The notes beneath the pieces were generated by a model. That model saw nothing but the letters and a program-made list of their open reading frames with translations. It was not told the DNA's origin and did no database searches. DNA of 64,000 nt from Malacoraja senta. Lineage: Eukaryota. The position numbers were made by a program, and so were the translations under genes. Each line of letters starts with the position of its first letter. The first letter of the stretch is position 1. The stretch covers positions 30,504,001 through 30,568,000 of the forward strand of contig CM075982.1 in the NCBI GenBank assembly GCA_038087875.1, read 5' to 3'. Shown piece by piece: positions 12,039 through 45,358 of the stretch.

Positions 12039-12144
12039 TAAGAGTGCAGGTAAGATGTGTCGAACGGAATTGCCGATGCTGGTTTACATCAAAGAGAGAC
12101 ACTAAAGCTGGAGTAACTCAGCGAGTCAGGAAGCATCTCTGGCT

Positions 12145-12630
12145 TGGGGCCTACACGATCTCCCGGTTGCCCAACACTTTAACTCCCCTTCCCATTCCCA
12201 CACTGACCTTTCTGTCCGGGGCCTCCTCCACTGTCAGAGTGGGGCCACACACACAAAATGGAGGAACAGCGCCTCATATTTCGCTTGGGCAGCTTACACC
12301 CCAGCGGTATGAACATTGATATCTCTAATTTCAAGTAACCCCTGTACTCCCTCTCTCTCTCCACCCCTCCCCCACCCTAGCCATCCTGCTAGTTCCACTG
12401 TTCGCTTCCCTGCATCCCTTCGTTATCACTTCTTCCACAGCCAACCATGGACCATCAGTGCCGGCTCTGATTTGTTCTGTACCTTTTCATACCTCTTCTT
12501 TTCCCCTCCCCTGACTCTCAGTCCCGAAACGTCACCTAGTCCTTTTTTTCCAGAGATGCTGCCTGTCCCGCTGAGTTACTCCAGCACGTTGAGTCTGTCA
12601 TTGGTGTAAACCAGCATCTGCAGTTCCTTC
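12145..12630 (+). mobile_element. Penelope-like element 3' fragment (GIY-YIG C-terminus and pLTR)
   Basis: DLPVAQHFNSPSHSHTDLSV.GLLHCQ...EEQRLIFRLGSLHPSGMNIDISNFK* (frameshifted), followed by the pLTR repeat. Confidence 0.8.
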
Positions 12631-13336
12631 CTACACATCCTCACATCATTGAACACACATCTCTGGCTCCCTATTATCTGATCCACTGTGCTGCCTGCTA
12701 TCTTTTCCCACAAGACCCGCTGACTTACTCCAGCTTTTGTGTCTCTCTTTGCACTCTTAGATCCCTTTGATCTACAGTTCTGGTCACCCCAAGACAGGAA
12801 GGATGTGGAGGAGTGTATAAGATCATAAGAGGAATAGATAGGGTCTTTACCTAGAGAAGAGGAACCAAAAACCAGAGGACATGGGTTAAATGTGAAAGGG
12901 GGGGGGGGGGATTTAATAGGAGCGTGAGGGGCATTTTTTTAATACACAAAGGGCATATGTATATGAAACAAGCTGTCGGAGGAGGTAGTTGAGGCACGTA
13001 CTATCACAATGTTCTAAAAACATTTAGACAGGCACATGGATAGGATAGGTTTAGAGGGATATGGGCCAAACGCAGGCAGTTGAATACTGTACAGGTTATA
13101 TGGGGCATGTTGGTCGGCATGGGCATGTTGGGCCAAAGGGCCCGTTTCCATGCTGTATATCTCTAAATACAATCAGGTCAAACTTAAATACAACAGGTAG
13201 AGCAAAGGGGATAAGCACAGAGTGAGTGCATCATATACAGTAGTTCTCAGCATTGGAGTGCACCAGTTCCACAGACAAAGTCTAATGTCTGCAATGGGGT
13301 GGAGGTGAGTCGGTTAGTGAAGTTTAGTGAAGTTAA

Positions 13337-13565
13337 AGGGCCTGTCCCACTTTCACGACCTAATTCACGACCTTTTTTACTCGTGGACATTTTTCATCAG
13401 GCTAGAAAGACGCCCTGACCTACTTGATGCCATGAGTACCTACGGCTAGCATCACGACCTACCTACAACCTACCTATGACCTCGTGACGACCATGCTGCG
13501 AGTATGAGTCATGGGCAAACTCGGCAGAGGTCGTGAATTAGGTCGTGAAAGTGGGACAGGCCCCT
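13337..13565. mobile_element. PIF/Harbinger MITE (type A), inverted relative to 11812-12038
   Basis: Same TIRs; internal segments in reverse order; TAA on the left. Confidence 0.85.
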
Positions 13566-13569
13566 TAGT

Positions 13570-14030
13570 TTATTGTCACGTGTACCAAGGTACAGTGAAA
13601 AGCTTTTGTTGCGCGCTAACCAGTCAGCGGAAAGACAATACATGTTTACCATTGATCCATGTACAGTGTATAAGATACACAATAACGTTAAGTGCAAGAT
13701 AAAGCCAGCAAAATCTGAGGGTCACCAAAGAGGTAGACAGTAGTTCAGCACTGCTCTCTGGTTGTTTGTAGGATGGTTCAGTTGCCTGATAACAGCTGGG
13801 AAGAAACTGTCCCTGAATCTGGAGGTGTGCGTTTTCACACTTCTGTACCTCTTGCCTGATGGGAGAGGGGAGAAGAGGAAGTGACCGGGGTGAGACTGGT
13901 CCTTGATTATGCTGCTGGCCTTGCCGAGGCAGCGTGAGGTGTAGATGGAGTCAATAGCAGGGAGGTTGGTTTGTGTGATGGTCGGGGCTGCGTCCACAAT
14001 TCGCTGCCATTTCTTGGATGGAGCTGTTTC
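13570..14030 (-). mobile_element. Rex1/Babar LINE 3' fragment
   Basis: ORF 13722..14072: QRIVDAA...SRCLGKASSIIKDQSHPGHFLFSPLPSGKRYRS...RFRDSFFP. Confidence 0.85.
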
Positions 14031-15763
14031 CAAACCGGCTCGTAACGCTAACGGCAGGTACTCGGGAAACACGGTAAGCTCGGGAAGACTCGGGAAGATT
14101 TTTCAACATGTTGAAAAATGTCCACGAGAGCCCCGAGTACCGACGAGCGGCCATTACCGTAAATCTCCGAGTTCGAATCAGGGCAAACTCGGTAGAACTC
14201 TTGGATGAACTCGTACAGTGGGACAGGGCTAAGGCTGGACTGGGCTCATTTCGGTTCTGCATAAAAGTTTGGCATCAGCATTCTTAGGCAATACAATTTG
14301 TCAAAAAAAGACTGGGGACAAAGGGCGGCACAGCGGTAGAGTTGCTGCCTCACGGCGCCAGAAACCCGGGTTCGATCCTGACTATGGGTGGCATCTGTAC
14401 GGAGTTTGTACGTTCTCCCCGTGACCTGCATGGGTTTTCTCTGGGATCTCCAGTTTCCCCCCACGCTCTAAAGATGTAAAAGTTTGAAGGCAAATTGTAA
14501 GTTGTCCCTAGTGTGTGTAGGATTGTTCTAGTGTGAGGGGATCGCTGGTCGGTAAGGTCACGGCCAATGGACCTGTTTCCGTGCTGTATCTCTAAACTAA
14601 AACTAAAATAACATCAACTTTTGGTTTCAATAGTAAATCACAACTACATTGGCAGCGACATAACCGTGGTGACCTCGTCCACCGCTGCTCCACCGCTGTA
14701 GGCAGCGTGCGCTCCACGTGCCTGGCCTCTTGGAGCGGTCCCCGGTCCAGCCGAGCCCCAGGCTGCTGCATGGCCTCCAGCGGCCACTCCCCCGTCTAGG
14801 CCCTGCACTCCCACCCGCAGCCGGTCTGAACACCGGCCCTCCAGGTGGGTCCCGTGGACCCTCGATCCGTCGCGGTCCGCTGAGACTTTGTGTCCTCCGG
14901 GCAGGCACCATGGCATGGCACCTCGGCAAGGCCTCTGCCGCGCGGTGACTTTGGAGAGGGTGCAGATGGGCTATACCAGAACGCTGCCTGGATTCGTGGG
15001 TATTAGCCACAGGGAGAGGTTGGACAGACGTGGATTGTGTCGTCTGCAACACTGTGGTGTCATCTGCAACACTGTGATTGCGGGGAGACCTGATAGAAGT
15101 AGAGTGTGTCAAATTACGAGTAGATGGGGTAGACAGTCACAGTCTTTATCCCAGGATGGGAAAATCTAATACGAGAGGTCATAGCTTCAAGGTGAGAGGG
15201 GCAAAGTTTAAAGGAGATGTGTTGTACTGTGAGTGGTGGGTGCCTGGAACACGTTGCCAGGGCTGGTGATGGAGGCATTTACAATAGTGGTGTTCAAGAG
15301 GTCTTTGGATAGACACACGAATGTGCAGGGAGTGGAGGGAGATGCATCTTGGGGCAGCCATGGTGGCGCAGCGGTAGAGTTGCTGCCTTCCAGCGCTTGC
15401 AGCACGGAGACCCAGGTTCGAAACCCGACTACGGGTGCTGTCTGGACGGAGTTTGTACGTTCTCCCCTTGACCTGCGTGGGTTTTCTCCGAGATCTTCGG
15501 TTTCCTCCCACACTCCAAAGACGTACAGGTTTGTCGGTTACTTAGCTTGGTATAAATGTAAAAATTGTCCCTAGTGGGTGTAGGATAGTATTAATGTGCG
15601 GGGATCGCTGGTCGGCGTGGACCCGGTGGGCCGAATGGCCTGTTTTCGAGCTGTATCTGTAAACTAAACTGAAAGTGCAGGCAGAGGAGATTAGTTTACC
15701 TTGGCAGGGATTGTGGGCCGAAGGGCCCTTTCCTGGGCTGTACTGCTCAAAGTTCAATGTTCT

Positions 15764-15963
15764 NNNNNNNNNNNNNNNNNNNNNNNNNNNNNNNNNNNNN
15801 NNNNNNNNNNNNNNNNNNNNNNNNNNNNNNNNNNNNNNNNNNNNNNNNNNNNNNNNNNNNNNNNNNNNNNNNNNNNNNNNNNNNNNNNNNNNNNNNNNNN
15901 NNNNNNNNNNNNNNNNNNNNNNNNNNNNNNNNNNNNNNNNNNNNNNNNNNNNNNNNNNNNNNN
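15764..15963. other. Assembly gap (200 N)
   Basis: Run of 200 n; a round length suggests a placeholder size. Confidence 1.
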
Positions 15964-16438
15964 ATGCCATCCCAATTGTTGATTGGTGGCTAGTGCAGAC
16001 TTGGTGGGCCGAAGGGCCTGTGTCGGTGCATCTCTCTATGACTCCATGGCTAAAGCTGCTGCCTCAAAGTCGGAAGGTTGTAGGTTCAGATTCATTTCAA
16101 GACTTCCTCATCGTCAGTAAGAATCCTCATTAAACGCCTATTGGGTGGAACTTTAAATGGAGGCTCCACTTTCCATTTCCTGGGTGGGGAGGGGGGTCGA
16201 GTGGATGTGATGTACCAATGAGTGGGTCTGGTGTCCTGGTCAATATTCCTCCCCCAGCAAACAAATAACTGGGTGATTTGCCGCAATGGGTCCATGTGGG
16301 TTGCCGGTGTGTCCAATCTCCACCGCATTTGCCAACAGCCACTAGTTTTGAAGAGGTTCATTGGCGAGAAGGCACAAGCATGTTCCAAGGACACAAAGGG
16401 TTTCTGCTGCATCCTGCCTGAAGTGCTCTTCCCTGGGC

Positions 16439-16453
16439 TCAGTACGGCTTCTT
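16439..16453 (-). CDS. TAPBPL: Tapasin-like exon 8 (KKPY-stop)
   Basis: Strong polypyrimidine acceptor; AAG AAG CCG TAC TGA gives a C-terminal KKxx motif. Confidence 0.75.
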   Translation of the reverse strand, partial: KKPY

Positions 16454-17431
16454 CTGCAGGGGAGAGAAAGGAAACGTGAGTGGAAAATCCGCGCCGTGGA
16501 CCGTAACCCGCCTCGCCCGCCGCGGATCGAGGGCCCACGGGAACCCACCTGGAGGGCCGGCGAGCAGACCAGCTGCGGGAGGGCGTGCACGGCCTAGATG
16601 GGGGAGTGGCCGCTGGAGGCCCTGCAGCATCCTGGGGCTCGGCTGGACCGGGTGCTGCTCCAAGAGGCCTACAGCAGTGGAGCAGCGGCGGAGGCTGACC
16701 CTGCAACGTTGCTTGGTTTTTTGCTCCGACATGCACTGTCAACTGTGGGACCTTATGTGTGCCTTTCCAAATCATGTCCAATCAATTTAATTTACCACTG
16801 GTGGACTCCAATCAAGTTGTAGAAACATCTCAAGGATAATCAATGGAAACAGGATGAACCTAAGCTCAATTTTGAGTGTCATAGCAAAGGGTCTGAATAC
16901 TTATGTAAATGTGATATTTCAGTTATTTCTTTTTAATTACTTTGCAAAACTTTATAAACACCTGTTTTCACTTCTTCATTCTGGGGTATTGTGTGTAGAT
17001 TGATGATTTAAAAAAATGAATTTAATCCATTTTAAAATAAGGCTGTAATGTAACAAAATGTGGTAAAAGTGAAGGGGTCTGAATACTTTCTGAATACACT
17101 GTAACTTTAGAAAGGAGATGAGGAGGAATTTCTTTGGTCAGATGGTGGTCAATCTGTGGAATTCATTGCCACAGACAGCTGTGGAGGCCAAGTCATTGGA
17201 TATTTATAAGGCGAAGATTGCAAGATGCTTGATTAGTACGGGTGTGAGGAGTTATAGGGAGAGGCCAAGAGAATGGAGTTGAGGGAAAGACAGATCAGCC
17301 ATGATTGAATGGGGGAGTAGACGAGATTGGTCAAATGGCCTACTTCTGCTCCAGTGACTTCGAAACTTACCATGTTTGTACTGTTTTCCTGCATGAATAA
17401 ATGTAGTATTCAAACACAATATTTCTCTTAC

Positions 17432-17448
17432 CTTGTTCTTGTCCATAA
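17432..17448 (-). CDS. TAPBPL: Tapasin-like exon 7 (17-nt micro-exon)
   Basis: gcag|TTATGGACAAGAACAAG|gtaaga. Confidence 0.75.
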
Positions 17449-18372
17449 CTGCAAAGCAAAGGATACAGCGTCATTACAACTTATGTCAGCACCACCACAT
17501 CACTGATACATCATCATTGCTAGCATCGTTCAAAACACTTTTTCAAAATGGATAAACTACATAGCAAAATTCACACGGCTATGAGCACAAACTCTTTCCT
17601 TGCTCTCCACTGAAGCTACAGGAATGGAAACACATTAGTTATGAATAGTTTAGTTTAGTTTAGTTTAGAGATACAACCGTGGAAACAGGCCCTTCGGCCC
17701 ACCGAGTCCGTGCCGACCAGCGATCCCTGCACCCTAACACTATCCTCTTCACTAGGCACAATCTTCACTGAAGCCAATTAACCAACAAACCTGTACGTCC
17801 TGGAGTGTGGGAGGAAACTGGAGCACCCGGAGAAAACCCACGCGGGCACAGGGAGGATGTACAAACTCCGTACAGACGGCGCCTGTAGTCAGGATCGAAC
17901 CCGGGGCTCTGTCGCTGTAAGGCCGCAACTCTACCGCTGCGCCACCGTGCCGCCCCAATAGACATCAGGTGACGTCATCTTCTGCAGAACAAACCCCAAA
18001 CTATACGTCAACAAAGGGCGGCACGGTGGAGCAGCGGTCGAGTTGCTGCCTGACAGCGCCAGAGACCCGGGTTCGACCCTGTCTACGGGTGCTGTCTGTG
18101 TGGAGTTCGCGTGTTCTCCCCGTGACCATGTGTGTTTTCTCCAGTTTCCTCCCACACTCCAAAGATGTGGATGTTTGTAGACAAATTGGCTTCTGTAAAT
18201 TGTCCCTAATGTGTAGGATAGAACTAGTGTACGGGGTGATCACTGCTCTGCACGGACTCGGTGGGCTGAAGGGCCTGATTCCACGCGGTCTCCCTAGTCT
18301 AAAGTAATCCTCGAGAGATGGGATCACCTCCCAATCATTAATAACATGTAAAATAAAACAGAAAGCACTCAC

Positions 18373-18465
18373 CTTTATTCAAGTGAATTAGTAGGATGAT
18401 CACAATAGCGCAGAAGAATAGAGTCAATATTAAAATTGAGATATAAAATAATATCTGAGGTCGTG
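18373..18465 (-). CDS. TAPBPL: Tapasin-like exon 6 (transmembrane)
   Basis: 93 nt, phase 1-1, hydrophobic run ILFYISILILTLFFCAIVIILLI. Confidence 0.87.
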
Positions 18466-19924
18466 CTGTGGAAAAAAAAATATATTGAGCATTACTGCTT
18501 TGAGACTTAGGACAGGAAGAAGAACTTCAGGCCATGCTGGACATGATGACATTAAACTCATCTCCCCTGGCTGCACATATTGGCCAAGTATTCACATACA
18601 AGGAATTTACCTTGGTGCTCCGCCCACAAGTAACAACATGACATACAGTGACAGTTACGAATGACTCAGAAAACACTAAACATTAATAATAATAAAACAT
18701 TAATGATAAAACACCATTGATCATGTGAACCAACAAAATACCAGATCAAAGGGAGGCTACAGATTTTTGGCTGTTGAGTAGAGCAACTACTCGTGGATAA
18801 AAACTGTTTTTATGTCTGGCTGTGGCAGCTTTGACAGTCCGGAGTCGCCTTCTAGAGGGAAGTGATTCAAAGAGTTTGTGGCCAGGGTGAGAGGGGTCAG
18901 AGATGATCTTGCCCGCTCGCTTCCTGGCCCCTGCAGTGTACAGTTCATCAACGTGACCCAAATCCCTCCATTCCCTGCACATCCATGTGCCCCTCTTAAA
19001 TGCCACCATTGCATCTGCTTCCACCACCACCCCTGGCAGCACATTCCAGACACCCACAGCCCTCTGTGTAAACAAACATGCCCAGCACAACTCCATTAAA
19101 CTTTCCCCTTCTCACCTGAAAGGTATGGCGTCTATCGTTGGACATTCCCTTCATAGACTGTCTACTCAATCTACACCCCTCATGATGTTATATACCTCTA
19201 TCTGGTCTCCCCTCAACCTCCGAAGCTCTAGAAAAAATAACCCCCCCTAATCCAGGCATCACTCTGGTAAACCCCTTCTGCACCCTCTCCGAAAACTCCA
19301 CATCCTTCCTGGAATAGGGTGACACTTCATTGCGTAGACTGGAAACAAGGGCGGCACGGTGGTGCAGCGGTAGAGTTGCTGCCTTACAGTACCAGAGACC
19401 CGGGTTCGATCCTGACTACGGGTGCTGTCTGTGTGGAGTGTGCACGTTCTCCCTGTGACCGTGTGGATTTCCTTTGGATGCTCTGGTTTCCTCCCACTTC
19501 CCAAAGACGTGCGGCTTTGTAGGTTGTCGACACAAGGAACTGCGGATGATGGTTTACCTCGGCCCACCTGGACAACCCCGACCATCGATCATCCGTTCAC
19601 GCTAGTTCCATGTTATCCCACTTTCTCGTTCACTCCCCACACACTAGGGGGACAGCTTAAAGAACAATTAACCTACAAACCCGCACGCCTTTGGGATGTG
19701 GGTGGGAAACCGGAGCACCCGGAGGTAACGCACGTGGCAATAGAGAGAGCGAGCAAACAGTACACGGACAGCACTGGAGGTCAGGATCGAACCCAGATCT
19801 CTGGCGCCGTGAGGCAGCAGCTCTACCGCTGCCTCACGGCTTGATGGTGGATGGTGATGGATGGTGCGTGTGGGCCGAAGGGCCTGGCTCCATGCAGTAT
19901 TTAAAATGTATGCTCATTGTTTAC

Positions 19925-20251
19925 CTTGCACTTTTACACGGACGTAGCGTTTGATCGTCTTCTCCAAGCTGACGTGGTCGACATGACAAATGAACATTGC
20001 GCCGTTGTCCTTGAGGAGGGCGGTGAAGCGGAAGTAGCTGGTCACGTTGAAGGTGCCGTCCCTGTTCGTCTCGTGTGGGGAGAAGACGGTGTTGGGCAGG
20101 TAGTCGGGCAGGAGGTGCCCTCCGCCCTGCCGCCTCTGCCAGCGCACGGTCACGTCCAGCGGGTAGTACCGCTCCGCGCCGCACGCCAGCTTCTGCTCGT
20201 CGCCCTCCCTCAACGAGAGCGAGCTGTGGCTCAGGGACACTGTGGGCGCCT
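19925..20251 (-). CDS. TAPBPL: Tapasin-like exon 5 (IgC1)
   Basis: 327 nt, phase 1-1; YYPLDV and CHVDH motifs; the only coding difference I found from the copy-1 exon is one synonymous His codon (19983 vs 6619). Confidence 0.92.
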
Positions 20252-23200
20252 CTGCACAGGGAGAGACAACACAATGCCGGAGTAACTCAACGGGACAGGC
20301 ACATCATCTCCGGAGAGAAGGAATGGGCGACGTTCCGGGTCGAGACCCGTCTTCAGACCGAGAGTCAGGGCAGAGGGAGACACAGAGATAAGGAGGTGTA
20401 AGGTGTGAAAACATGACATCAAAGGGGACGAGGGCCAAGGAAAATGTAGAATAAATCATTGTTAGAAACATAGAAACATAGAAAACAGGTGCAGGAGTAG
20501 GCCATTCGGCCCTTCGAGCCTGCACCGCCATTCAATATGGTCATGGCTGATCATCCAACTCAGTATCCCGTACCTGCCTTCTCTCCATATCCCCTGAACC
20601 CTTTAGCCACAAGGGCCACATCTAACTCCCTCTTAAATATAGCCAATGAACTGGCCTCAACTACCTTCTGTGGCAGAGAGTTCCACAGATTCACCACTCT
20701 CTGTGTGAAAAATGTTTTTCTCATCTCGGTCCTAAAAGACTTCCCCCTTATCCTTAAACTGTGACCCCTTGTCCTGGACTTCCCCAACATCGGGAACAAT
20801 CTTCCTGCATCTAGCCTGTCCAACCCCTTAAGAATTTTGTAAGTTTCTATAAGATCCCCCCTTAATCTTCCAAATTCTAGCGAGTACAAGCCGAGTCTAT
20901 CCAGTAGCTAGGAGAAGGTGACAACGAAGCATACAGAGATAGAATTTAATCAGGGCTAGACAAAAGTGCTGGAGAAACTCAGCAGGTGCGGCAGCATCTA
21001 TGGAGCGAAGGAAATAGGCAACGTTTTGGCCCGAAACGTTGCCTATTTCCTTCGCTCCATAGATGCTGCCGCACCCGCTGAGTTTCTCCAGCACTTTTGT
21101 TTACCTTCGATTTTCCAGCATCTGCAGTTCCTTCTTGAACATACTTAATCAGGGGGACAGTCAGACTGGTCGAACTAGAGAGGAGGAGGGATGGAGAGGG
21201 AAAGCAAGGGCACGTGGCGTTAGAGAAGTCAATCTTCATACCGCTGTGGTGTAAGCTGCCCAAGCGATATATGACATGCTGTCCCTCCACCTTTCCTCAC
21301 TCTGACAGTGGAGGAGGCCCCAACAATGATATATTCTACATTTTCAGGGGAGAGGGTGACACAGAGATATGGAAGGGTAAGGTGTGAAAACAAGATCAAA
21401 GGGGATGGTTTTGCCACAGTTTGATGAGCATTAGGCTGACGTTTATCATTGTAGGTTGGAATCCGACACATTTTATACGTTCAAAACATAGTCCTGACCT
21501 CATTGGAGACCCTCGGACTACATTTAAATGGACTTTACTGGCTTTACCTTGCACTAAACGTTATTCCCTTATCTTGTATCTATAGGCTGCTAATGGCTCG
21601 ATTGTAATCATGTATTGTCTTTCCGCTGACTGGATAGCATGCAACAAAAGCTTTCCACTGTGCCTCGGTACACGTGTCAATAAACTAAACGGCCTGTCCC
21701 ACTTGGCGATTTTTTTTCGCCGACGGCCGGCATCATATCAGTGTCGCCAAAAGATTTTGAACATTTCAAAATCCAGCGGCGACAAAAGAAATGTTGCGAC
21801 ACTTGAAAAAACACGTCATACGTCATCACGCCGCATATTTTTCGGTGATCTGATACGTCAGTCAATGATGCTGGCAGTCGCCGAAAAAAATCGGCATGTG
21901 GGACAGGCCCTTAAATTAAACTGAGCCTTTGTAAGTTCATATGTGCTGGGAGCAGAATGAGGCCATTCGGCCCATCAAGTCTACTCCCATTCAATCATGG
22001 CTGATCTATCTTTCCCTCTCAACCCCATTCTCCCTGCCTTCCTGACACCCGCACTAATCATTAATCTGTCCATCTCTGCCTTAAAAATATCCATTGACTT
22101 GGCCTCCACAGCCATCCGTGGCAATGAATTCCACCGATTCACCACCCTCTGACTAAAGAAATTCCTTCTCATCTCCTTTCTAAAGGTACGTCCGTTTATT
22201 CTGAGGCTCTGGCCCCAGACTCTCCCACTAGTGGAAACATCCTCTCCACATTCACTCCATACAGTCCTTTCGTGACAGCTTTTTAAACTTTTAAAACATA
22301 GAAACTTCATAGTTTTAAAACAGAAACTTTGTAGGTTTGAAACAGAGAAACGTTGTAGTTTTAAAACGTAGAAACATTGTAGTTTTAAGACATAGGTAGG
22401 TTTAAACCGTACACATTTTGTAGGATTAAAACTCACTCACATGATCCATATCCCTCCATTCTCTGCATATCTAGTTTGCTAATTTACTGTAACTAGCTAT
22501 AACCATGTGGGATTCAACCATGTTCGGTGAAGATTGAAGATGTTTTATCAATTATTTGCATTAATCTTAATTACAGAACTCTGCACTTCACCCCGGCACT
22601 GAACTAACACTTGCAGTACAGTCATTAATCCCACTCCGAAGGCTGACATAGAAACATAGAAAATAGGTGCTGTACCGGCAATTCAATATGATCATGGCTG
22701 ATCATCCAAAATCAGTACCCAGTTCCTGCTTTCTCCTCATATCCCTTCCTTGATTCAGTTAGCCCTAAGAGCTATATCTAACTCTCTCTTGAAAACATCC
22801 ATGGAGTTGGCCTCCACTGCCCTCTGTGGCAGAGAATTCCACAGATTCACAACTCTCTGGGTGAAGAAGTTTTCCCTCATCTCAGTCCTAAATGGCCTGC
22901 CCCTTATTCTTAAACTGTGACCCCTGGTTCTGGACTCCCCCAACATCAGGAACATTTTTCCTGCATCTAGCCTGTCCAACCCCTTAAGTATTTTATGTTT
23001 CTATAAGATACCCTCTTCATAAACAAAAGGAACTGCAGATGCTGGTTTACACTGAAGATAGACATAAAAAGCTGGAGTAACTCAGAGGGACAGGCAACAT
23101 CTCTGGAGAAAAGGAATATGTGACGTTTCGGGTCGAAAGTCTGAAGAAGGGTCACAACCCGAAACATCACCTATTACTTTTCTCCAGAGATGCTGCCTGT

Positions 23201-23772
23201 CCCACTGAGTTACTCCAGCTTTTTGTATCTATCTTTAAGGATAGGTGATATTATGGTTCGGGACCCTTCTTCAGAGATGGGACCCGTCTGAAGAAGGGTC
23301 TTGACCAAAAACATCGCCCATCCATGTTGTCCAGTGATGCTGCCTGACCCGCTGCGTTACTCCAGCTGAAGATTTCCGCCTGATTTTCTGCTAATGTCTC
23401 CACCACCCAAAAATATTAATCTAAGTTCAATACTCAAGGGTGGCACGGTGGCGCAGCGGTAGAGTTACTGCCTCACAGCGCCAGAGACCTGGGTTCGATC
23501 CTGACTACGGGTGCTGTCTGTACGGAGTTTGTACGTTCTCCCCGTAACCTGTGAGGGTTTTCTCCGAGATCTTCGGTTTCCTCCCACACTCCAAAGACGT
23601 GCAGGTTTGTAGGTTAATTGTCTTGGTATAAGAGTAAATTGTGCCTAGAGTGTGTAGGGCAGTGCTAGTATGCGGGGATTGCTGGTCGGCGTGGATTTAG
23701 TGGGCCGAATGGCCTGTTTCTGCACTGTATCCCTAAACTAAACTGGTTGTGTCATCAAAATTGGCAACTTAC

Positions 23773-24111
23773 CCCATATCTCCAGATTGATGGTGTGTGT
23801 TCCAAAGAGTGGAGGGACATACACCAAGCAGGTGTAGGATCCTTCACTGCGAATGTCGACATTTCTTATGCGGATGGATGCATTCCCGTCTCCGATCTGA
23901 TCCAAGAATGCCTCAACTCCCTTCTCGATCTGTTCGGTCTGCTGGTTCTTCCCATTGTAGATAAACAGTTTCTTCCTCACGCCTCGGTGCTGATACCTCC
24001 AGTCAATGTAAAAGTCCGTCCTGTGGTCAATCTTGAAGCCGCAGTCCAGAACGAGGTCTCGCTTCATTTTGCTTCTGACCAATGGAGTTCGTGTGCGGAT
24101 AACATAGTTCA
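23773..24111 (-). CDS. TAPBPL: Tapasin-like exon 4 (IgV)
   Basis: 339 nt, phase 1-1; two Ig cysteines and an N-glycosylation site (NAS). Confidence 0.92.
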
Positions 24112-27100
24112 CTAGCAAGTGAAAAGGAACAACAGTTATCACATCGATTATTAATGATATCACACAAGTTTCATTTACCTCAGATAGACACATAATGCTG
24201 GAGACACTCAGCGGGTCAGGCAACATCTCTGGAGAAAAGGAATAGGTGTCGTTTCGGGTGGACCCGGATCTGAAGAAGGGTCTCGACCCGAAACATCACC
24301 TATTCCTTTTCTCCAGAGATGCTGTCTGACTCGCTGACCTACTCCAGCTTTTTGTGTCTATCTTCGATTTAAACCAGCATCTGCAGTTCCTTCCTACACA
24401 TTTAATTTACCTCAGATGCCTACCATTTTAGTCTACCTATTCATTGCCGTCTAGGCTTTAATTCTTTTGTAATACAGATCCACCCCCGATCTTCCGGCAA
24501 GTGGTGGTCCAGCACCTCCTTTAACCCGGACAAAATCACAAGAGCGCACTTGAAAATCACCCCCGGAAATCCCCCTGAACACGTGGACCCCAGTCCGGGA
24601 GAGGCGGCCGATCCCGATCTCATCGGGGGGCTTCCGCGGCCGATCGCCGGGTCAGATTTGCTCTCTGCGGCCGGGGCTCTGGAACTCCTGCCCGGCCGGA
24701 GCCGGCAGATCCGTTCCCATGACCGACTTCCGAGGCCGACTTTGCGGGCCGTGACCTCTGACGGTCCGGCAAAACGGATAATACGGCAAGGCTCTGGAAC
24801 CGAGGGTGCCGGAGAATCGGCGGTGGTCCTGTATTGTTGGAAAAGGGGGTTTGTAAATCATTCCTCCGCTATTCCCTGCTGAGGTAAAAAAATATCACGG
24901 CATTTCTAAATGGGTAAATGATATTAGGTTTTAGTGCTATGTTTATTATCGTCACTTGTACCACAATGACAAGCTTGGTATTGCATGCTACCCAAACTGA
25001 TCAGATAATACTATGCATAACACACCAGGATCTTGATCGGTTGGGTAGGCGAGCTGAGGATTGGTTAATGGAGTTTGATGCAGATAAGTGCGAGGTGGTG
25101 CGTTTTGGAAAGTCTAACCAGGGCAAGACCTATACCGTGAATGGCAGGGCTCTGGGGAGTGTTGTAGATCACAGGGATCTAAAGGGCCTGTCCCACTTTC
25201 ACGACCTAATTCACGACCTCTGCCGAGTTTGTCCTTGACTCATACTCATAGCATGGTCGTCACAAGGTCGTAGGTAGGTCGTAGCAGGCCGTGATGCTAG
25301 TCGTAGGTACTCGTGGCATCAAGTAGGTCGAGGCGTTTTTTCAACATGATGAAAAATGTCCACGAGTAAAAAAGGTCGTGAATTAGGTCGTGAAAGTGGG
25401 ACAGGCCCTTAAGAGTGCAGGTAAGATGTGTCGAACGGAATTGCCGATGCTGGTTTACATCAAAGAGAGACACTAAAGCTGGAGTAACTCAGCGAGTCAG
25501 GAAGCATCTCTGGCTTGGGGCCTACACGATCTCCCGGTTGCCCAACACTTTAACTCCCCTTCCCATTCCCACACTGACCTTTCTGTCCGGGGCCTCCTCC
25601 ACTGTCAGAGTGGGGCCACACACACAAAATGGAGGAACAGCGCCTCATATTTCGCTTGGGCAGCTTACACCCCAGCGGTATGAACATTGATATCTCTAAT
25701 TTCAAGTAACCCCTGTACTCCCTCTCTCTCTCCACCCCTCCCCCACCCTAGCCATCCTGCTAGTTCCACTGTTCGCTTCCCTGCATCCCTTCGTTATCAC
25801 TTCTTCCAAAGCCAACCATGGACCATCAGTGCCGGCTCTGATTTGTTCTGTACCTTTTCATACCTCTTGTTTTCCCCTCCCCTGACTCTCAGTCCCGAAA
25901 CGTCACCTAGTCCTTTTTTTCCAGAGATGCTGCCTGTCCCGCTGAGTTACTCCAGCACGTTGAGTCTGTCATTGGTGTAAACCAGCATCTGCAGTTCCTT
26001 CCTACACATCCTCACATCATTGAACACACATCTCTGGCTCCCTATTATCTGATCCACTGTGCTGCCTGCTATCTTTTCCCACAAGACCCGCTGACTTACT
26101 CCAGCTTTTGTGTCTCTCTTTGCACTCTTAGATCCCTTTGATCTACAGTTCTGGTCACCCCAAGACAGGAAGGATGTGGAGGAGTGTATAAGATCATAAG
26201 AGGAATAGATAGGGTCTTTACCTAGAGAAGAGGAACCAAAAACCAGAGGACATGGGTTAAATGTGAAAGGGGGGGGGGGGATTTAATAGGAGCGTGAGGG
26301 GCATTTTTTTAATACACAAAGGGCATATGTATATGAAACAAGCTGTCGGAGGAGGTAGTTGAGGCACGTACTATCACAATGTTCTAAAAACATTTAGACA
26401 GGCACATGGATAGGATAGGTTTAGAGGGATATGGGCCAAACGCAGGCAGTTGAATACTGTACAGGTTATATGGGGCATGTTGGTCGGCATGGGCATGTTG
26501 GGCCAAAGGGCCCGTTTCCATGCTGTATATCTCTAAATACAATCAGGTCAAACTTAAATACAACAGGTAGAGCAAAGGGGATAAGCACAGAGTGAGTGCA
26601 TCATATACAGTAGTTCTCAGCATTGGAGTGCACCAGTTCCACAGACAAAGTCTAATGTCTGCAATGGGGTGGAGGTGAGTCGGTTAGTGAAGTTTAGTGA
26701 AGTTAAAGGGCCTGTCCCACTTTCACGACCTAATTCACGACCTTTTTTACTCGTGGACATTTTTCATCAGGCTAGAAAGACGCCCTGACCTACTTGATGC
26801 CATGAGTACCTACGGCTAGCATCACGACCTACCTACAACCTACCTATGACCTCGTGACGACCATGCTGCGAGTATGAGTCATGGGCAAACTCGGCAGAGG
26901 TCGTGAATTAGGTCGTGAAAGTGGGACAGGCCCCTTAGTTTATTGTCACGTGTACCAAGGTACAGTGAAAAGCTTTTGTTGCGCGCTAACCAGTCAGCGG
27001 AAAGACAATACATGTTTACCATTGATCCATGTACAGTGTATAAGATACACAATAACGTTAAGTGCAAGATAAAGCCAGCAAAATCTGAGGGTCACCAAAG

Positions 27101-29844
27101 AGGTAGACAGTAGTTCAGCACTGCTCTCTGGTTGTTTGTAGGATGGTTCAGTTGCCTGATAACAGCTGGGAAGAAACTGTCCCTGAATCTGGAGGTGTGC
27201 GTTTTCACACTTCTGTACCTCTTGCCTGATGGGAGAGGGGAGAAGAGGAAGTGACCGGGGTGAGACTGGTCCTTGATTATGCTGCTGGCCTTGCCGAGGC
27301 AGCGTGAGGTGTAGATGGAGTCAATAGCAGGGAGGTTGGTTTGTGTGATGGTCGGGGCTGCGTCCACAATTCGCTGCCATTTCTTGGATGGAGCTGTTTC
27401 CAAACCGGCTCGTAACGCTAACGGCAGGTACTCGGGAAACACGGTAAGCTCGGGAAGACTCGTGAAGATTTTTCAACATGTTGAAAAATGTCCACGAGAG
27501 CCCCGAGTACCGACGAGCGGCCATTACCGTAAATCTCCGAGTTCGAATCAGGGCAAACTCGGTAGAACTCTTGGATGAACTCGTACAGTGGGACAGGGCT
27601 AAGGCTGGACTGGGCTCATTTCGGTTCTGCATAAAAGTTTGGCATCAGCATTCTTAGGCAATACAATTTGTCAAAAAAAGACTGGGGCCAAAGGGCGGCA
27701 CAGCGGTAGAGTTGCTGCCTCACAGCGCCAGAAACCCGGGTTCGATCCTGACTATGGGTGGCATCTGTACGTAGTTTGTACGTTCTCCCCGTGACCTGCA
27801 TGGGTTTTCTCTGGGATCTCCAGTTTCCCCCCACGCTCTAAAGATGTAAAAGTTTGAAGGCAAATTGTAAGTTGTCCCTAGTGTGTGTAGGATTGTTCTA
27901 GTGTGAGGGGATCGCTGGTCGGTGAGGTCACGGCCAATGGACCTGTTTCCGTGCTGTATCTCTAAACTAAAACTAAAATAACATCAACTTTTGGTTTCAA
28001 TAGTAAATCACAACTACATTGGCAGCGACATAACCATGGTGACCTCGTCCACCGCTGCTCCACCGCTGTAGGCAGCGTGCGCTCCACGTGCCTGGCCTCT
28101 TGGAGCGGTCCCCGGTCCAGCCGAGCCCCAGGCTGCTGCATGGCCTCCAGCGGCCACTCCCCCGTCTAGGCCCTGCACTCCCACCCGCAGCCGGTCTGAA
28201 CACCGGCCCTCCAGGTGGGTCCCGTGGACCCTCGATCCGTCGCGGTCCGCTGAGACTTCGTGTCCTCCGGGCAGGCACCGTGGCATGGCACCTCGGCAAG
28301 GCCTCTGCCGCGCGGTGACTTTGGAGAGGGTGCAGATGGGCTATACCAGAACGCTGCCTGGATTCGTGGGTATTAGCCACAGGGAGAGGTTGGACAGACG
28401 TGGATTGTGTCGTCTGCAACACTGTGGTGTCATCTGCAACACTGTGATTGCGGGGAGACCTGATAGAAGTAGAGTGTGTCAAATTACGAGTAGATGGGGT
28501 AGACAGTCACAGTCTTTATCCCAGGATGGGAAAATCTAATACGAGAGGTCATAGCTTCAAGGTGAGAGGGGCAAAGTTTAAAGGAGATGTGTTGTACTGT
28601 GAGTGGTGGGTGCCTGGAACACGTTGCCAGGGCTGGTGATGGAGGCATTTACAATAGTGGTGTTCAAGAGGTCTTTGGATAGACACACGAATGTGCAGGG
28701 AGTGGAGGGAGATGCATCTTGGGGCAGCCATGGTGGCGCAGCGGTAGAGTTGCTGCCTTCCAGCGCTTGCAGCATGGAGACCCAGGTTCGAAACCCGACT
28801 ACGGGTGCTGTCTGGACGGAGTTTGTACGTTCTCCCCTTGACCTGCGTGGGTTTTCTCCGAGATCTTCGGTTTCCTCCCACACTCCAAAGACGTACAGGT
28901 TTATCGGTTACTTAGCTTGGTATAAATGTAAAAATTGTCCCTAGTGGGTGTAGGATAGTATTAATGTGCGGGGATCGCTGGTCGGCGCGGACCCGGTGGG
29001 CCGAATGGCCTGTTTTCGAGCTGTATCTGTAAACTAAACTGAAAGTGCAGGCAGAGGAGATTAGTTTACCTTGGCAGGGATTGTGGGCCGAAGGGCCCTT
29101 TCCTGGGCTGTACTGCTCAAAGTTCAATGTTCTTAAACCACAGGTTATGGAAACTCACATTGTAAAAACAATTGTGTCAATGAGGCCTCCAATATTTCAA
29201 ACTTACAATTACAAAGTCGTTCTCCCACAGGATTTTCCCACGGAAAAAATAAAGCTTGAAAGCGCGCAGCACCAGACTCAGGAACAGTTTCTTCCCCTCT
29301 GTTATCGGGCTTCAGAACGGTCCTTCCATTAGCTAGGGTACTGCCCGATTCACCTCTACCCCATTGCGGACATTGGACTCTGTCTCTGGAACTGATGCGC
29401 TACAATGCTGAGAACTATATTCTGCACTCTGTATCTTCCCCTTTGATCTACCTAGTCTACTTGAGTGAGACTTGATTTGTAGTTGTGAATTGTCTGAATA
29501 ACATGCAAAACAAAGCTTTTCACTGTACCTTGGTACACATGACAATAATAAACCTAACCCCACTAATAGCACGGCAGCACAACAGCAGAGTTGCTGCCTT
29601 TACAGCGCCAGAGACACAGGTTCGATCCTGACTCTGGGTGATTCCTACAATTTTACCGAAGCCAATTAACCTACAAACCTGTACGTCTTTGTAGTGTGGG
29701 AGGAAACCGGAGTACCCAGAGAAAACCCACGCAGTCACAGGGAGAACGTGCGAACTCCGTACAGACAGCACCCGTAGTCAGGATCGAATCTGGGTGACGG
29801 CGCTGTGAGGCAGAAGCACTACCGCTGCGCCACCGTGCAGTTTT

Positions 29845-30283
29845 AGACAATAGGTGCAGGAGTAGGCCATTCGGCCCTTCGAGCCAGCACCGCCATTCAA
29901 TGTGATCATGGCTGATCATCCCCAATCAGTACCCCGTTCCTGCCTTCTCCCCATATCCCCTGACTCAGCTATTTTTAAGAGCCCTATCTAGCTCTCTCTT
30001 GAAAGCATCCAGAGAACCTGCCTCCACCGCCCTCGGAGGCAGAGAATTCCACACTCACCACTCTCTGTGAGAAAAAGTGTTTCCTCGTCTCCGTTCTAAA
30101 TGGCTTACTCCTTGTTCTTAAACTGTGGCCCCTGGTTCTGGACTCCCCCAACATCGGGAACACGTTTCCTGCCTCTAGCGTGTCCAAGCCCTTAACAATC
30201 TTATATGTTTCAATGATATACCCTCTCATCCTTCTAAACTCCAGAGTGTACAAGCCCAGCCACTCCATTCTCTCAGCATATGA
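29845..30283 (-). mobile_element. CR1 LINE 3' fragment
   Basis: ORF 29984..30286: MSYAERME.LGLYTLEFRRMRG...RTRGHSLR. Confidence 0.88.
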
Positions 30284-30430
30284 CATTTACTATTGGTTAA
30301 AACTAAATTGGTTAAAACTAAACTTTTGATTTACTATTGGTTAAAACTAAAATATGCATGGTTTAAAAACACCTGTCTTTTCTTGTGTCATTTTGAGCAA
30401 GATTAGTCGTCTCAAGTGTCAAAACGTTAC

Positions 30431-30718
30431 CTTCAATGATGAGGGTGTCCGTGTTTCCAATGGGTGAAGTGTCCTCATCGGTTGGTGCTTCAATCTGCTC
30501 CTTGGCCTCGTGATCAAGTTTTAGTTCTCTCATGAAGCTGGTTGTGATGAACTTGCCGTGTCTGTGCTTCAGAGTCATGGTGAACCATCGCCTCCCCGGA
30601 ATTTCTTCACCCTGGTGAGGCCAGTCAACATGGTGGTTGTGTGTGGAATACCGGCTGATTTCACATTCCAATTCCTCGTGTTTCCCGTCTACATATTGGA
30701 AAATATCCACAGCGGAGC
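30431..30718 (-). CDS. TAPBPL: Tapasin-like exon 3 (N-terminal domain)
   Basis: ttttcttaccag|GC TCC GCT GTG...ATT GAA G|gtaacg; 288 nt; LECEISRY...W...WF is a tapasin-family motif. Confidence 0.9.
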
Positions 30719-31983
30719 CTGGTAAGAAAAGGAAAAGTTCACATTTCTATTTGGCGGAAAGATGATTCACAAGCGTCGTCGAGTCGTACTGCCTGGAAAA
30801 ACAGGCCCAACCTGCCCACACCAGCCAACATGTCCCATCTACACTCGTCCCACCTGCCTGCGTATGGCCTATGTCCCTCAGTCTGCAGAAGGGTCTCGAC
30901 CCGAAACGTCACCCATTCCTTCTCTCCAGAGATGCTGCCTGTCCCGCTGAGTTACTCCAGCATTTTGTGTCTACCTATATCCCTCTAAACCAGTCCTATC
31001 CATGATGTACCTGATACATACATCCATATACACTTCATGAGGAGGTAGTTGAGGTACCAGACTATCACAATGGTCAAGAAACATTTAGATAGGTACATGG
31101 ATAGGATTGGTTTAGAGGGTTATGAGCCAAAGGCAGGCAGGAGGGACAACCTTAGATGGGGCACGTTGGTCAGCATGGGCAAGTTGGGCCAAAGGGCCTG
31201 TTTCCACGCTGTGTGACTCCATAAAAGCACTTTAGAAATACTACTCGTGCATCACAGCCTGGCTCAGGGAAGTCGAACGCTCAACAACAAAGAAGGCTGC
31301 AGAAAGTGGTGGACAAGGCCCAGTCCATCACGGGTACTGACCTCCTCACCATCGAAGGGTGGTGAATCTGTGGAATTCTTTGCCACAGACGGCTGTGGAG
31401 ACCAAGTCAGTGGATATTTTTACGGCAGAAATAGATCGTTTCTTGATTAGAAACATAGAAACACAGAAAATAGGTGCAGGAGGAGGCCATTTGGCCCTTC
31501 GAGCCAGCACCGCCATTCATTGTGATCATGGCTGATCGTCCCCAATCAATAACCCGTGCTTGCCTTCTCCCCATATCCCTTGATTCCACCAGCCCCTAGA
31601 GCTCTATCTAACTCTCTCTTAAATCCATCCAGTGACTTGGCCTCCACTGCCCTCTGTGGCAGGGAATTCCACAAATTCACAACTCTCTGGGTGAAAAAAA
31701 AAATTCTCACCTCAGTCTTAAATGGCCCACCCCTTTATTCTAAGATTAGTACGGGTGTCATAGGTTATTGGGAGGAGGCAGGAGAATGGGGTTAGGAGGC
31801 AGAGATAGATCAGCCATGATTGAATGGCGGAGCAGACGTGATGGGCCGAATGGCCTAATTCTACGCCTATCACATGACCTCATGATGGGATCTGCAGGAA
31901 GTACTGCCTCAATAAGGCAGCTAATAGAAGTTGCCTATCCACAAAAAACCTGCTTGCTGACCTCACTTCATGTGTCAGGGTAC

Positions 31984-32163
31984 CTTTTACTTTAAAATGA
32001 ATTGCTTTCTCATTGGTATCGATACCACCAAAGAGCAGTAACGCCTTCCTCAAGACGGTCGAGTGGTCCAACATATGAGCCCCTTCATTTTGCTTCTCTT
32101 CTCGAAAGGTGCATTCCAACTTTCTGTTTGCATCAGTGTGTCCATTCTGGGCCAGCGCTGTCC
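31984..32163 (-). CDS. TAPBPL: Tapasin-like exon 2
   Basis: cctcttcag|GG ACA GCG...GTA AAA G|gtaccc; 180 nt; first cysteine (LECTF) and RKALLLFG. Confidence 0.85.
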
Positions 32164-32352
32164 CTGAAGAGGTAGGAAGTGTAAAACAAAGGGAAAGTTT
32201 TTTTAACAATGCTTGAATAACGCATTTAACAGCGTCACTTCATTGAGAATATATGCATATAAACATATGTCTATATGTGTATAAACAAGAATGTAGACAC
32301 AAAGTGCTGGAGTAACTCAGCGGGTCAGGCAGCATCTGCGGAGAAAAAGAAT

Positions 32353-32386
32353 AGGTGACGTTTCGGGTCGGGACCCTTCTTCAGAC
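32353..32386 (-). ncRNA. Minimal hammerhead-ribozyme motif in a Penelope-like pLTR, sense to tapasin-like intron 1
   Basis: gt-CTGAAGA-a-gggtc-cc-gaccc-GAAA-cg-TC|-acct: intact core, GUC cleavage triplet, palindromic ACGT stem III. Confidence 0.6.
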
Positions 32387-32589
32387 AACCTGAAAGGGTT
32401 AGGAGATGTGCGGGGGTGGCGGATACGACAGTGGCGTTTAAGAGACTTTTGGACAGGCCCATGGATATGCAGGGAATGGAGGGATATGGATCATGTGCCG
32501 GCAGATAAGAGTTGGTCTTGGCATCATGTTGGGCACAGACATTGTGGGCCGAAAGGCCTGATCCTGTGCTGTACTGTTGTATGCTCTAT

Positions 32590-33445
32590 AGGGAGGTTTC
32601 ACGGCAGTCGGGTCACGACCCATGACCCGTACTGTTGCTACGCTACGCCAAGTGGAGTACACGCGATGAACTGCAGGTAAATACTTAGGATTGTTTCCAG
32701 CTTAGCCGGCCGTTAAAACCCGCCCAGGTTGTCAATTTTTGCGCTGTAAATAATGATGGAAATCGGGATAAGCGTGAGAGACATTTATCCTACTTCCGAA
32801 TTCAAAAAGTGAGGAGAAATGACGGTAGATAGAAGCGAGTGCTTGGCGAACATTGGCCGTTTGCTCATTGCATTTCATCAACTAAGGCATTATTTGTGTT
32901 TTTTCTTGATTCCTTTGGCATCTAAAAAGTTTCAGAAGGGATAAATCTGGCTGTAAAATTTTAAAATCGTCCATTGTTCTCGTGGGTTTTTACATACAAA
33001 AAGAAAACGCCTCTGAAGCAAAATTTACAACCAGATTTATCACTTCTGAGCCTTTTTAGATATCAAAGGAATCAAGAAAAAAAACAAATAATGCCTTACC
33101 GTTGATGAAATGCAGTGAGCAAACGCGATAATTCCCGATATTTTCAATTCCGATATCTGCATGGCCAATGTTCGCCAAGCACTTTAGCTGTTGTTGTCCC
33201 TTCAGCTGTCGCTTCTCTTTACCTTCATTTCGCTTCACTTTTGGAATTGTGAAGTTGGGTACATGTCTCTCACAGTTACCCCGACTTCCACAAAAATTCA
33301 ACATTTTGGCGGTTTTTAACGGGTAGGAAAGTACGTGTTTCTTGCATTAATAACATATACCGGAAGTTACGGATGTCGTCCAGATGGATTGAGCGGCTCC
33401 GTGCGTCAAGCCCTATGACCCAGTCACCTTACGTGCAACCCCCCT
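32590..33445 (+). mobile_element. Non-autonomous ISL2EU-type (PIF/Harbinger-related) DNA transposon with THAP remnants
   Basis: AGGG...CCCT termini, AT TSD (32588-32589 and 33446-33447), THAP-like peptides (NFC...YRVCSLHFINGK). Confidence 0.75.
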
Positions 33446-33765
33446 ATGGTCCCAAAGAAGCAACTCACGCCCCTGTCTGCTTTCGGATATTGTTGCTGGC
33501 TGTGCCTGAGGTTGAATATATAACGACTAAACTGGGCATTCGGTTTGACTGGAGGTCCAATGGGAATGGTATGTTTGGGGAAAGAACTGCAGATGCTGCT
33601 TTAAGCGAAGATAGACACACAAAATGCTGGAGTAACTCAGCGGGTCAGGCAGCATCTCTGGAGAGAAGGAATAGGTGACGGGGTCCAGTGCCTTCTTCAG
33701 AAACGGGTTCAATGTAACACTAAGCAGCGCGGTGCCAATCGGCTGACAGCGCCGGGTGGTCTTAC

Positions 33766-33799
33766 CAGCGACGAGAATGTGAAGCAGCAGAGCGAACAT
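33766..33799 (-). CDS. TAPBPL: Tapasin-like exon 1 (signal peptide MFALLLHILVA-G)
   Basis: ATG TTC GCT CTG CTG CTT CAC ATT CTC GTC GCT G|gtaaga; phase 1 joins exon 2. The symbol refers to the tapasin family; the lineage is discussed in the findings. Confidence 0.85.
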
Positions 33800-33900
33800 G
33801 TGGAGTAGATGTGGAGCTGGGTTGATGTGGAGCTGGGTTGATGTGGAGCTGGGTTGATGTGGAGCTGGGTTGATGTGGAGCCGGGGTTGATGTGGAGCGG
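33798..33900. repeat. 16-bp tandem repeat in the tapasin-like 5' UTR
   Basis: Four perfect atgtggagctgggttg units (33809-33872) plus three degenerate units. Confidence 0.95.
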
Positions 33901-33924
33901 GTCAGGCAGGCAGCGGGCCGGTCA

Positions 33925-33940
33925 TTTCACTTTCGATTTC
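33925..33940 (-). promoter_or_regulatory. ISRE/IRF-E with three GAAA half-sites
   Basis: Minus strand GAAATCGAAAGTGAAA, about 125 nt upstream of the ATG. Confidence 0.8.
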
Positions 33941-34028: not shown

Positions 34029-34330
34029 GGACAAAGGACAGGCAGTGTGGGCGGGGAGGTGATGGGGAGGAGAGAGGGGTGGAAAGGAGAAGGGGTGGGA
34101 GGGTTGTAGAGGGGAGGGGGGTTTGGAGAAAGGGGGGGGGGAGAGAGGTGGAGATGGGGAAGCAGAGGAGAGGGGGTTTGGGAAGAGGAGGGAGGGGTCT
34201 GGAGAGGGGAAAGGGAGCGGATGGTATGGGGAGGGAGGGGTCTGGAGAGGGGAAGGGGAGCGGATGGTATGGGGAGGGGGGGAGTGGAGAGGGGAAGGGG
34301 GGTGGTGGAGGAGAGGAGAGATTGCCAGAG
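34029..34330 (+). repeat. G/A-rich low-complexity tract with an internal ~43-bp duplication
   Basis: Many G3+ runs; ggagggaggggtctggagagggga...gagcggatggtatgg occurs twice. Confidence 0.85.
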
Positions 34331-45346: not shown

Positions 45347-45358
45347 ATGACCACCTTT

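Follow-up and report, generated by a model that had tools for sequence, protein, structure and literature searches.

A skate orthologue of the third tapasin-family lineage as a candidate chaperone or editor of class I molecules

Which member of the tapasin family is encoded on the minus strand of a 64,000-nucleotide stretch of the skate Malacoraja senta genome (GenBank assembly GCA_038087875.1, contig CM075982.1, positions 30,504,001 to 30,568,000), and what might its product do for class I molecules of the major histocompatibility complex (MHC-I)? This whole stretch is called the window here, and all coordinates refer to it. An original prediction, made from the letters of the window, had placed the gene with neither classical tapasin (TAPBP) nor the tapasin-related protein TAPBPR and had assigned it to a third lineage of the family. 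The locus is indeed the skate orthologue of this third lineage, TAPBPL in the sense of Grimholt 2018, which is distinct from the gene named TAPBPL by HGNC (= TAPBPR). The lineage itself is already known and automatically annotated, and the window gene is an ordinary member of it. TAPBPL was described in teleosts, gar, frog, turtle, alligator, birds and marsupials, as a gene lost in placental mammals; it lacks a lysine in the transmembrane (TM) segment, some members have an endoplasmic reticulum (ER) retention signal, and a 'unique' unpaired cysteine was reported 11 residues after the position of tapasin C95 (Grimholt 2018, PMC5824609). A third family member in non-mammalian jawed vertebrates was also recognized by Kaufman 2022 (PMC9586880). 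The TAPBPL genes of salmon were found to be inducible by interferon gamma (IFN-gamma), their function being stated as unknown (Grimholt et al. 2020, PMC7573153). We read the 'tapbpl' of Verissimo et al. 2023, glossed there as 'tapasin-related protein', as TAPBPR and not as the third lineage (PMC10751288). No paper describing the third lineage in cartilaginous fish was found in the literature searched, although NCBI automatic annotation does list chondrichthyan orthologues.

The gene comprises eight coding exons on the minus strand, running from 33799 to 16439, and all of its splice sites are AG/GT. Introns 1–6 are in phase 1 and intron 7 is in phase 0. Exon 1 (33766–33799) carries the ATG and the signal peptide (MFALLLHILVAG...) and ends in a phase-1 donor. 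The N-terminal domain starts in exon 2 (31984–32163), with C29 and a long loop between strands 1 and 2 (NEGAHMLDH, residues 37–45), and is completed by exon 3 (30431–30718), which holds G83, C90 within the CEISRY motif, E91 and M119. Exon 4 (23773–24111) encodes an immunoglobulin (Ig) V-like domain (Pfam V-set, 4e-9) with the C191–C262 pair, the IDWRYQ strand (D204, R206 and Q208) and an NAS sequon at 244. An IgC1 domain (Pfam C1-set, 1e-8) with the C304–C369 pair, the YYPLDV motif and an NVT sequon at 349 is encoded by exon 5 (19925–20251). The TM helix (residues 394–416), which contains no Lys, Arg, Asp or Glu, occupies exon 6 (18373–18465). Exon 7 (17432–17448; VMDKNK) is a micro-exon of 17 nucleotides, located through a scan for splice sites and phase, which joins the KKPY exon in frame to the TM exon and its phase-1 donor. 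The last exon (16022–16453) encodes KKPY and the stop codon (16453–16439), followed by a 3' untranslated region (UTR) that reaches at least 16022.

The resulting coding sequence (CDS) of 1293 nucleotides yields a predicted type I membrane protein of 430 amino acids whose C-terminal tail reads ...HLNKVMDKNKKKPY. Its luminal cysteines are those at 29, 90, 191, 262, 304 and 369, one further cysteine lies within the TM segment at 408, and two N-glycosylation sequons are present (N244 and N349). The eight-exon reconstruction thus returned exactly what the original prediction had described, namely 430 residues with six luminal cysteines (C29, C90 and two Ig pairs), an uncharged TM segment followed by a KKPY end, and the motifs CEISRY (residues 90–95) and IDWRYQH (203–209).

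A transcript contig of 1.9 kb from a related skate (L001, Logan SRR13269348) matches exons 1–6 and 8 with identical boundaries, covering 33844–33765 at the 5' end and 16455–16022 at the 3' end. Upstream of its called open reading frame (ORF), the frame of this contig gives the same start methionine and MFALLLHILVAG as the window model, and the N-terminus is also that of the Amblyraja protein. Exon 7 is shorter than BLAST can align; it is supported by its splice sites and by the presence of VMDKHK/VMDKNK in the Rhinoraja and Amblyraja proteins. Residues 1–430 align to the orthologues of Amblyraja radiata (XP_032901516.1, 431 amino acids) and Leucoraja erinacea (XP_055513516.1) with 90% identity, and the Rhinoraja longicauda protein (XP_078278281.1) is 80% identical to the model. 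The gene is intact and under purifying selection, with a ratio of non-synonymous to synonymous substitution rates (dN/dS) of 0.37 between the window CDS and the skate mRNA, and its orthologue is transcribed in the related skate.

Exons 4–8 lie in a duplicated block beside an assembly gap, and the transcript support comes from a related skate rather than from M. senta itself. Both circumstances would suit a pseudogene or an assembly chimera, in which case the 430-residue protein would be an artefact of exon joining. We consider this very improbable, as the frame stays open across eight exons with canonical splice sites, the model is colinear from end to end with the proteins of three other skates and with the skate mRNA, dN/dS is low, both copies of exons 4–8 give an identical protein, and Amblyraja holds the same gene as a single copy next to the same neighbour.

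The window is vertebrate DNA with one gap of 200 Ns (15764–15963), which is flanked exactly by two copies of a 13.2-kb block in direct orientation. Copy Y (15964–29133) contains the exons 4–8 used in the gene model, and copy X (2593–15763), which ends at the gap, is 99.1% identical to it, with 79 mismatches and 16 gap openings over 13.19 kb. The second copies of exons 4–8 are found in X at 10739–10401, 6887–6561, 5089–4997, 4072–4056 and 3082–3068, and the 3' UTR is doubled too; between X and Y these exons show one synonymous difference. The duplicate is most likely an unmerged overlap of two scaffolded contig ends, that is, a false duplication, because Amblyraja has one collinear copy: its locus continues unbroken from the equivalent of 29226 via one block into the equivalent of 1930. 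We think a recent tandem duplication specific to this species less likely. Neither origin would change the gene model.

The assignment to the third lineage is carried by the phylogeny. To gather family sequences, the IgV exon was run with HMMER against 1.84 billion representatives and two word-seeded searches followed; two maximum-likelihood (ML) trees of 50 rows each were built under LG+C20+F+G4 and left unrooted, as there is no safe outgroup. Three clades were recovered: TAPBP (support 100/99 and 100/100), TAPBPR (100/100) and a third clade (100/100). As the original prediction had anticipated, the window protein groups inside neither TAPBP nor TAPBPR; it falls in the third clade, among skates, outside the pair formed by Amblyraja and Leucoraja. 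Approximately unbiased (AU) tests reject the constrained trees that unite the third-clade chondrichthyans with TAPBPR or TAPBP (difference in log-likelihood 44, p ~1e-4). The remainder of the third clade consists of 11 or 12 chondrichthyan sequences (chimaera, sharks, rays and skates), coelacanth, lungfish, sturgeon, paddlefish, bowfin, teleosts, amphibians, a bird and a marsupial, and the gene tree within it mirrors the species tree. This clade corresponds to the TAPBPL of Grimholt, since the gar, chicken, turtle and salmon sequences of her supplementary material end in KKKPY, KPKPY or RKPY. The third lineage is found in holocephalans, sharks and batoids alongside TAPBP and TAPBPR, which dates it to the gnathostome ancestor.

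The same species carry members of the other clades, so the window gene is a third paralogue and not a diverged TAPBP or TAPBPR. Carcharodon, Heptranchias, Heterodontus, Mustelus and Scyliorhinus also have TAPBPR, with sharks carrying the third-lineage gene in the same species; Mobula has a third-lineage gene plus a partial TAPBPR (a fragment of 262 amino acids), and TAPBP-clade genes were found in Callorhinchus, Pristis and Leucoraja. A search seeded with catshark TAPBPR retrieved seven sharks and the Mobula fragment and no skate, sawfish or chimaera, which is not evidence of absence given the word-based prefilter; search sensitivity or annotation, rather than gene loss, may account for this pattern. 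Against this background, a skate TAPBPR (HGNC TAPBPL) that has merely diverged is ruled out by the tree and highly improbable in our judgement. Human TAPBPR is the best sequence match among solved structures for both Ig exons and for the clade profile, CEISRY is common to TAPBPR, and several orthologues are named 'tapasin-related protein(-like)' at NCBI. Nevertheless, five shark genera and Mobula hold a separate TAPBPR-clade gene beside the third-lineage gene, the clade is supported at 100/100, its union with TAPBPR is rejected (p = 1e-4), and the TAPBPR-invariant cysteine of LLHADC is missing.

There is next to no probability that the gene is classical skate tapasin, an identification excluded by the tree and by the existence of a separate skate tapasin. 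The dilysine end resembles that of tapasin, and the Amblyraja and Rhinoraja orthologues are named 'tapasin-like' at NCBI; the AU test, however, rejects this union as well, the neighbouring gene is EXO5 with no MHC gene seen within 64 kb, and Leucoraja has a TAPBP-clade gene of its own (P0264, Leucoraja erinacea XP_055486225.1), with a TM lysine in LYGALK and a KKKN end. About 15 Logan transcripts of skate tapasin were also retrieved, many of them with ORFs of 271–292 amino acids that have an internal start and cover the V-C1-TM part only.

If the gene belongs to neither known editor, how much of their machinery could its product share? The partners of tapasin and TAPBPR offer the clearest differences. 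In the TAPBPR clade, the C94 motif LLHADC is conserved from shark to mammal, and C94 is required for association with UGT1 (PMC5441866). The C94 position is aligned with G83 in the window protein (YVDGKHE). The loop around tapasin C95 is likewise free of cysteine in the window protein in our own alignment to the human tapasin sequence. The claim of the original prediction that no cysteine is available for UGGT1 or ERp57 therefore stands. The extra cysteine of TAPBPL, found in the motif WFTCT, is replaced by M119. In our alignment of the clade it was present in sturgeon, paddlefish, teleosts and condor only, and none of the 11 chondrichthyans had it, nor did coelacanth, lungfish, the three amphibians or wombat. 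Because it is confined to ray-finned fish and a bird in this alignment, the WFTCT cysteine is a sub-clade trait and does not define the lineage. The chondrichthyan TAPBPL sequences sampled have no unpaired luminal cysteine.

The TM segment is uncharged in all 25 third-clade members, versus a Lys or Arg within the TM in six of the eight tabulated TAPBP-clade sequences and in skate tapasin; the tapasin-type lysine for TAP is thus missing from residues 394–416, again in line with the earlier claim. The last five residues follow the pattern K-K/R/P/S-K-P/H-Y in 22 of the 24 clade members, the window protein ending in KKKPY, and the two percomorphs have six additional residues beyond the K-x-K-P-Y motif. 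With lysines at positions -3 and -5, the tail fits the K-x-K-x-x dilysine rule. Dilysine C-termini direct COPI retrieval. The earlier statement that such an end is absent from TAPBPR held for the sampled TAPBPR sequences, except for one bat isoform ending in KKKE.

The fold was examined in an AlphaFold2 (AF2) model of the Amblyraja orthologue, 90% identical and used as a proxy for the window protein, which was built from a 24-sequence alignment (mean predicted local distance difference test score, pLDDT, 83.5; predicted template modelling score, pTM, 0.73). The 16 best Foldseek matches in the PDB were all tapasin or TAPBPR chains, with E-values of 7.6e-25 to 1e-19 over 350–440 aligned columns. 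Sequence comparisons pointed in the same direction: the clade profile matched human TAPBPR at 1.6e-46, exon 4 retrieved human TAPBPR in a phmmer search of the PDB, and the top PDB matches of exon 5 were TAPBPR chains (7.5e-9). The PDB sequence search with the exon of the N-terminal domain alone gave no match, and only the Ig exons, the profile of the clade and the search by fold tie the protein to TAPBPR and tapasin. In the model, the orthologue shows the ectodomain fold of tapasin and TAPBPR in full: a barrel at the N-terminus is fused to an IgV-like domain, and IgC1 and a single TM segment follow. The cysteine pattern of the superfamily is also present, with C29 and C90 (CEISRY; motif C-E-x-S/N-R/P-Y/F) and C304 and C369, which are invariant or nearly so in the clade.

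The surface with which tapasin contacts MHC-I appears to be largely retained. Tapasin mutants define two sets of positions, TN3 (E72K) and TN6 (E185K/R187E/Q189S/Q261S) (PMC7117912). In the profile alignment to the TAPBPR chain 5wer_C, four of these five positions are kept in the window protein, as E91 (tapasin E72), D204, R206 and Q208. The E/D-W-R-x-Q strand that contains the latter three is found in the chondrichthyans (Callorhinchus has E for Q), coelacanth, lungfish, sturgeon, paddlefish, Scleropages and Denticeps. In the AF2 model, strands 25–36 and 45–56 are separated by a loop of about the length of the TAPBPR scoop loop, with a low-confidence tip at 40–42, and a hydrophobic pair in this loop is conserved in chondrichthyans (ML, VL, VF or MF).

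Is the gene also regulated like a component of the class I pathway? A proximal element resembling an interferon-stimulated response element (ISRE) or a site for interferon regulatory factors (IRF), GAAATCGAAAGTGAAATGAC, lies on the minus strand at 33921–33940, 122–141 nucleotides upstream of the ATG. The sole GAAAGTGAAA of the 64-kb window is found here in sense orientation, 126–135 nucleotides upstream of the ATG and within GAAATCGAAAGTGAAA, where chance would give about 0.24 occurrences per window of this size, both strands counted. The Amblyraja orthologue also has GAAAGTGAAA in sense orientation before the ATG, at -122, as do those of Amphiprion (-81), Scleropages (-66) and Xenopus (-51); the condor has GAAAGCGAAA at -427. 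This positional recurrence suggests that GAAAGTGAAA is a conserved ISRE/IRF site, consistent with the induction data from salmon.

A tandem repeat with a 16-nucleotide unit (5.9 copies, 95% matches) occupies 33808–33902 of the window, between the ISRE and the ATG, and lies partly in the 5' UTR as judged from the skate mRNA; G-rich repeats follow beyond it at 34086–34300. In Amphiprion ocellaris, a second V-set/C1-set gene (434 amino acids; 23145–28611 of the clownfish locus) follows the TAPBPL orthologue immediately downstream, in tandem. This gene, probably a teleost tandem duplicate, is preceded by a GAAAGTGAAA of its own about 78 nucleotides upstream of its start.

Putting these elements together, we hold with fair confidence that the product would be an interferon-responsive, ER-retrieved and TAP-independent chaperone or editor of MHC-I belonging to the third lineage, a proposal drawn from sequence features. 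The signal peptide would be cleaved to leave a type I ER membrane protein, and its K-x-K-x-x end (KKKPY) would confine it to the early secretory pathway by way of COPI retrieval. There it would engage MHC-I and beta2-microglobulin with the same face as tapasin and TAPBPR, a surface proposed because E91, D204, R206 and Q208 are kept together with a long loop bearing a conserved hydrophobic pair. It would then work away from the TAP-bound loading complex, stabilizing or editing MHC-I as a chaperone or peptide editor, since no Lys or Arg is present in the TM segment. In cartilaginous fish, it would need no cysteine-dependent partner (ERp57 or UGGT1), given that no luminal cysteine is unpaired. 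Its expression would be driven by interferon and IRF together with the class I pathway, through the conserved proximal ISRE. The analysis establishes the gene structure, the place in the family, the fold, the kept residues and the promoter element, and we infer from them the localization, MHC-I binding, editing, TAP independence and, in skates, the interferon response.

Several observations weigh against this proposal. The positions of tapasin Q261/TAPBPR Q272 and of TAPBPR I261 are both Thr in the window protein. No E-W-R-x-Q motif remains in the tetrapod and percomorph members, so that MHC-I binding may not extend across the whole clade. A role for the scoop loop is disputed even for TAPBPR (PMC10308438). 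The predicted structure is that of the orthologue rather than of the window protein itself, modelled free of MHC-I. The conservation of Pro-Tyr at -2/-1 exceeds the requirements of a dilysine signal and hints at a different or further function of the tail. Finally, the literature searched holds no functional, localization or binding data for any member of the lineage.

The main rival accepts the third lineage and gives it another client: in the ER, the protein would retain or chaperone some other member of the Ig superfamily or a class I-like molecule of the non-classical type, or else it would act as a negative regulator that holds MHC-I back. The two threonines (T261 and T272) and the loss of E-W-R-x-Q in tetrapods would be at home in such a reading, as would the resemblance of the V-C1 part to B7-H6 and B7-H3. 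The function of the lineage is given as unknown in two studies (PMC5824609, PMC7573153), and placental mammals lost it with no obvious loss of classical class I loading (PMC5824609). However, the whole ectodomain matches tapasin and TAPBPR, including the N-terminal domain specific to the family, fish members keep four of the five TN3/TN6 positions, and the ISRE promoter and the IFN-gamma induction in salmon fit the class I pathway (PMC7573153). We therefore regard a different client or a retention function as rather unlikely and retain the MHC-I chaperone or editor as the preferred reading.

The 3' exons of EXO5, the upstream neighbour, were identified on the minus strand at 49684–52452 (Pfam Exo5, 2.7e-23 and 4.4e-7) and are collinear with Amblyraja Exo5; otherwise, retroelements make up the rest of what was seen in the 64 kb. 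The interval that separates EXO5 from the gene contains long retroelement ORFs at 39665–46732, among them one resembling a reverse transcriptase/endonuclease (41834–43852) and a gypsy-type pol (43606–45354). The order EXO5 then TAPBPL is common to the window, Amblyraja and the white shark. EXO5 was absent within 10 kb of the orthologues of Xenopus (where NCBP3 was found), condor (a Rap-GAP gene) and Scleropages (a TPR_Edg1 gene). The synteny with EXO5 that had been envisaged across vertebrates is accordingly borne out in elasmobranchs and fails at the three bony-vertebrate loci sampled.

What, then, does the locus add? All three chondrichthyan groups have the lineage in intact and conserved form, and its occurrence across Chondrichthyes next to TAPBP and TAPBPR is a modest novelty. 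The same holds for the lack of any unpaired luminal cysteine among chondrichthyans, for the K-x-K-P-Y end and the proximal ISRE as deeply conserved features, and for the linkage to EXO5 seen only in elasmobranchs. Tail motif and interferon-type promoter element are alike in cartilaginous and bony vertebrates, and the form in cartilaginous fish has none of the residues by which the other two editors are bound to TAP, ERp57 or UGGT1. Peptide editing of MHC class I is known only for tapasin and TAPBPR. A bolder and quite doubtful extension, which we put forward tentatively, is that chondrichthyan TAPBPL, driven by interferon and retrieved to the ER, would edit class I molecules on its own, with no need for docking to TAP or for ERp57 or UGGT1. 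If this were true, it would represent the minimal and possibly ancestral design of the tapasin family, and the K-x-K-P-Y tail and ISRE, conserved since the gnathostome ancestor, would mark a third independent route of MHC-I quality control that was lost in placental mammals. The gene offers biochemistry a clean, partner-free candidate, and by itself reveals no new kind of system.

Compared with TAPBPL as described by Grimholt, the window gene shares the 100/100 clade, the eight-exon architecture, the uncharged TM segment, the short K-x-K-P-Y tail and the IFN-type promoter element; it differs, along with all sampled chondrichthyans, in lacking the WFTCT cysteine, and the EXO5 neighbour is found only in elasmobranchs. 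Tapasin, the MHC-I editor bound to the peptide-loading complex (PLC), resembles the protein in fold (Foldseek E 7.6e-25 to 3f8u), in its dilysine-type end, and in the TN3 Glu and three of the four TN6 positions. Nevertheless, tapasin forms a separate clade, and the window protein has neither the TM Lys/Arg for docking to TAP nor the C95-loop cysteine for ERp57; no MHC gene was seen beside its gene in the 64 kb, and skates have a tapasin of their own. TAPBPR, a PLC-independent MHC-I peptide editor and the closest solved relative by sequence, has in common with it CEISRY, EWRxQ, YYPLDV, the long loop between strands 1 and 2 and the absence of a TM lysine, a feature from which the window protein is presumably TAP-independent as well. 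The two differ in that TAPBPR constitutes a separate clade, that the equivalents of I261 and Q272 are Thr, that no bridge to UGGT1 is predicted because the C94 equivalent is G83, and that the window protein carries a C-terminal dilysine signal, which among the sampled TAPBPR sequences is shared only by the bat isoform.

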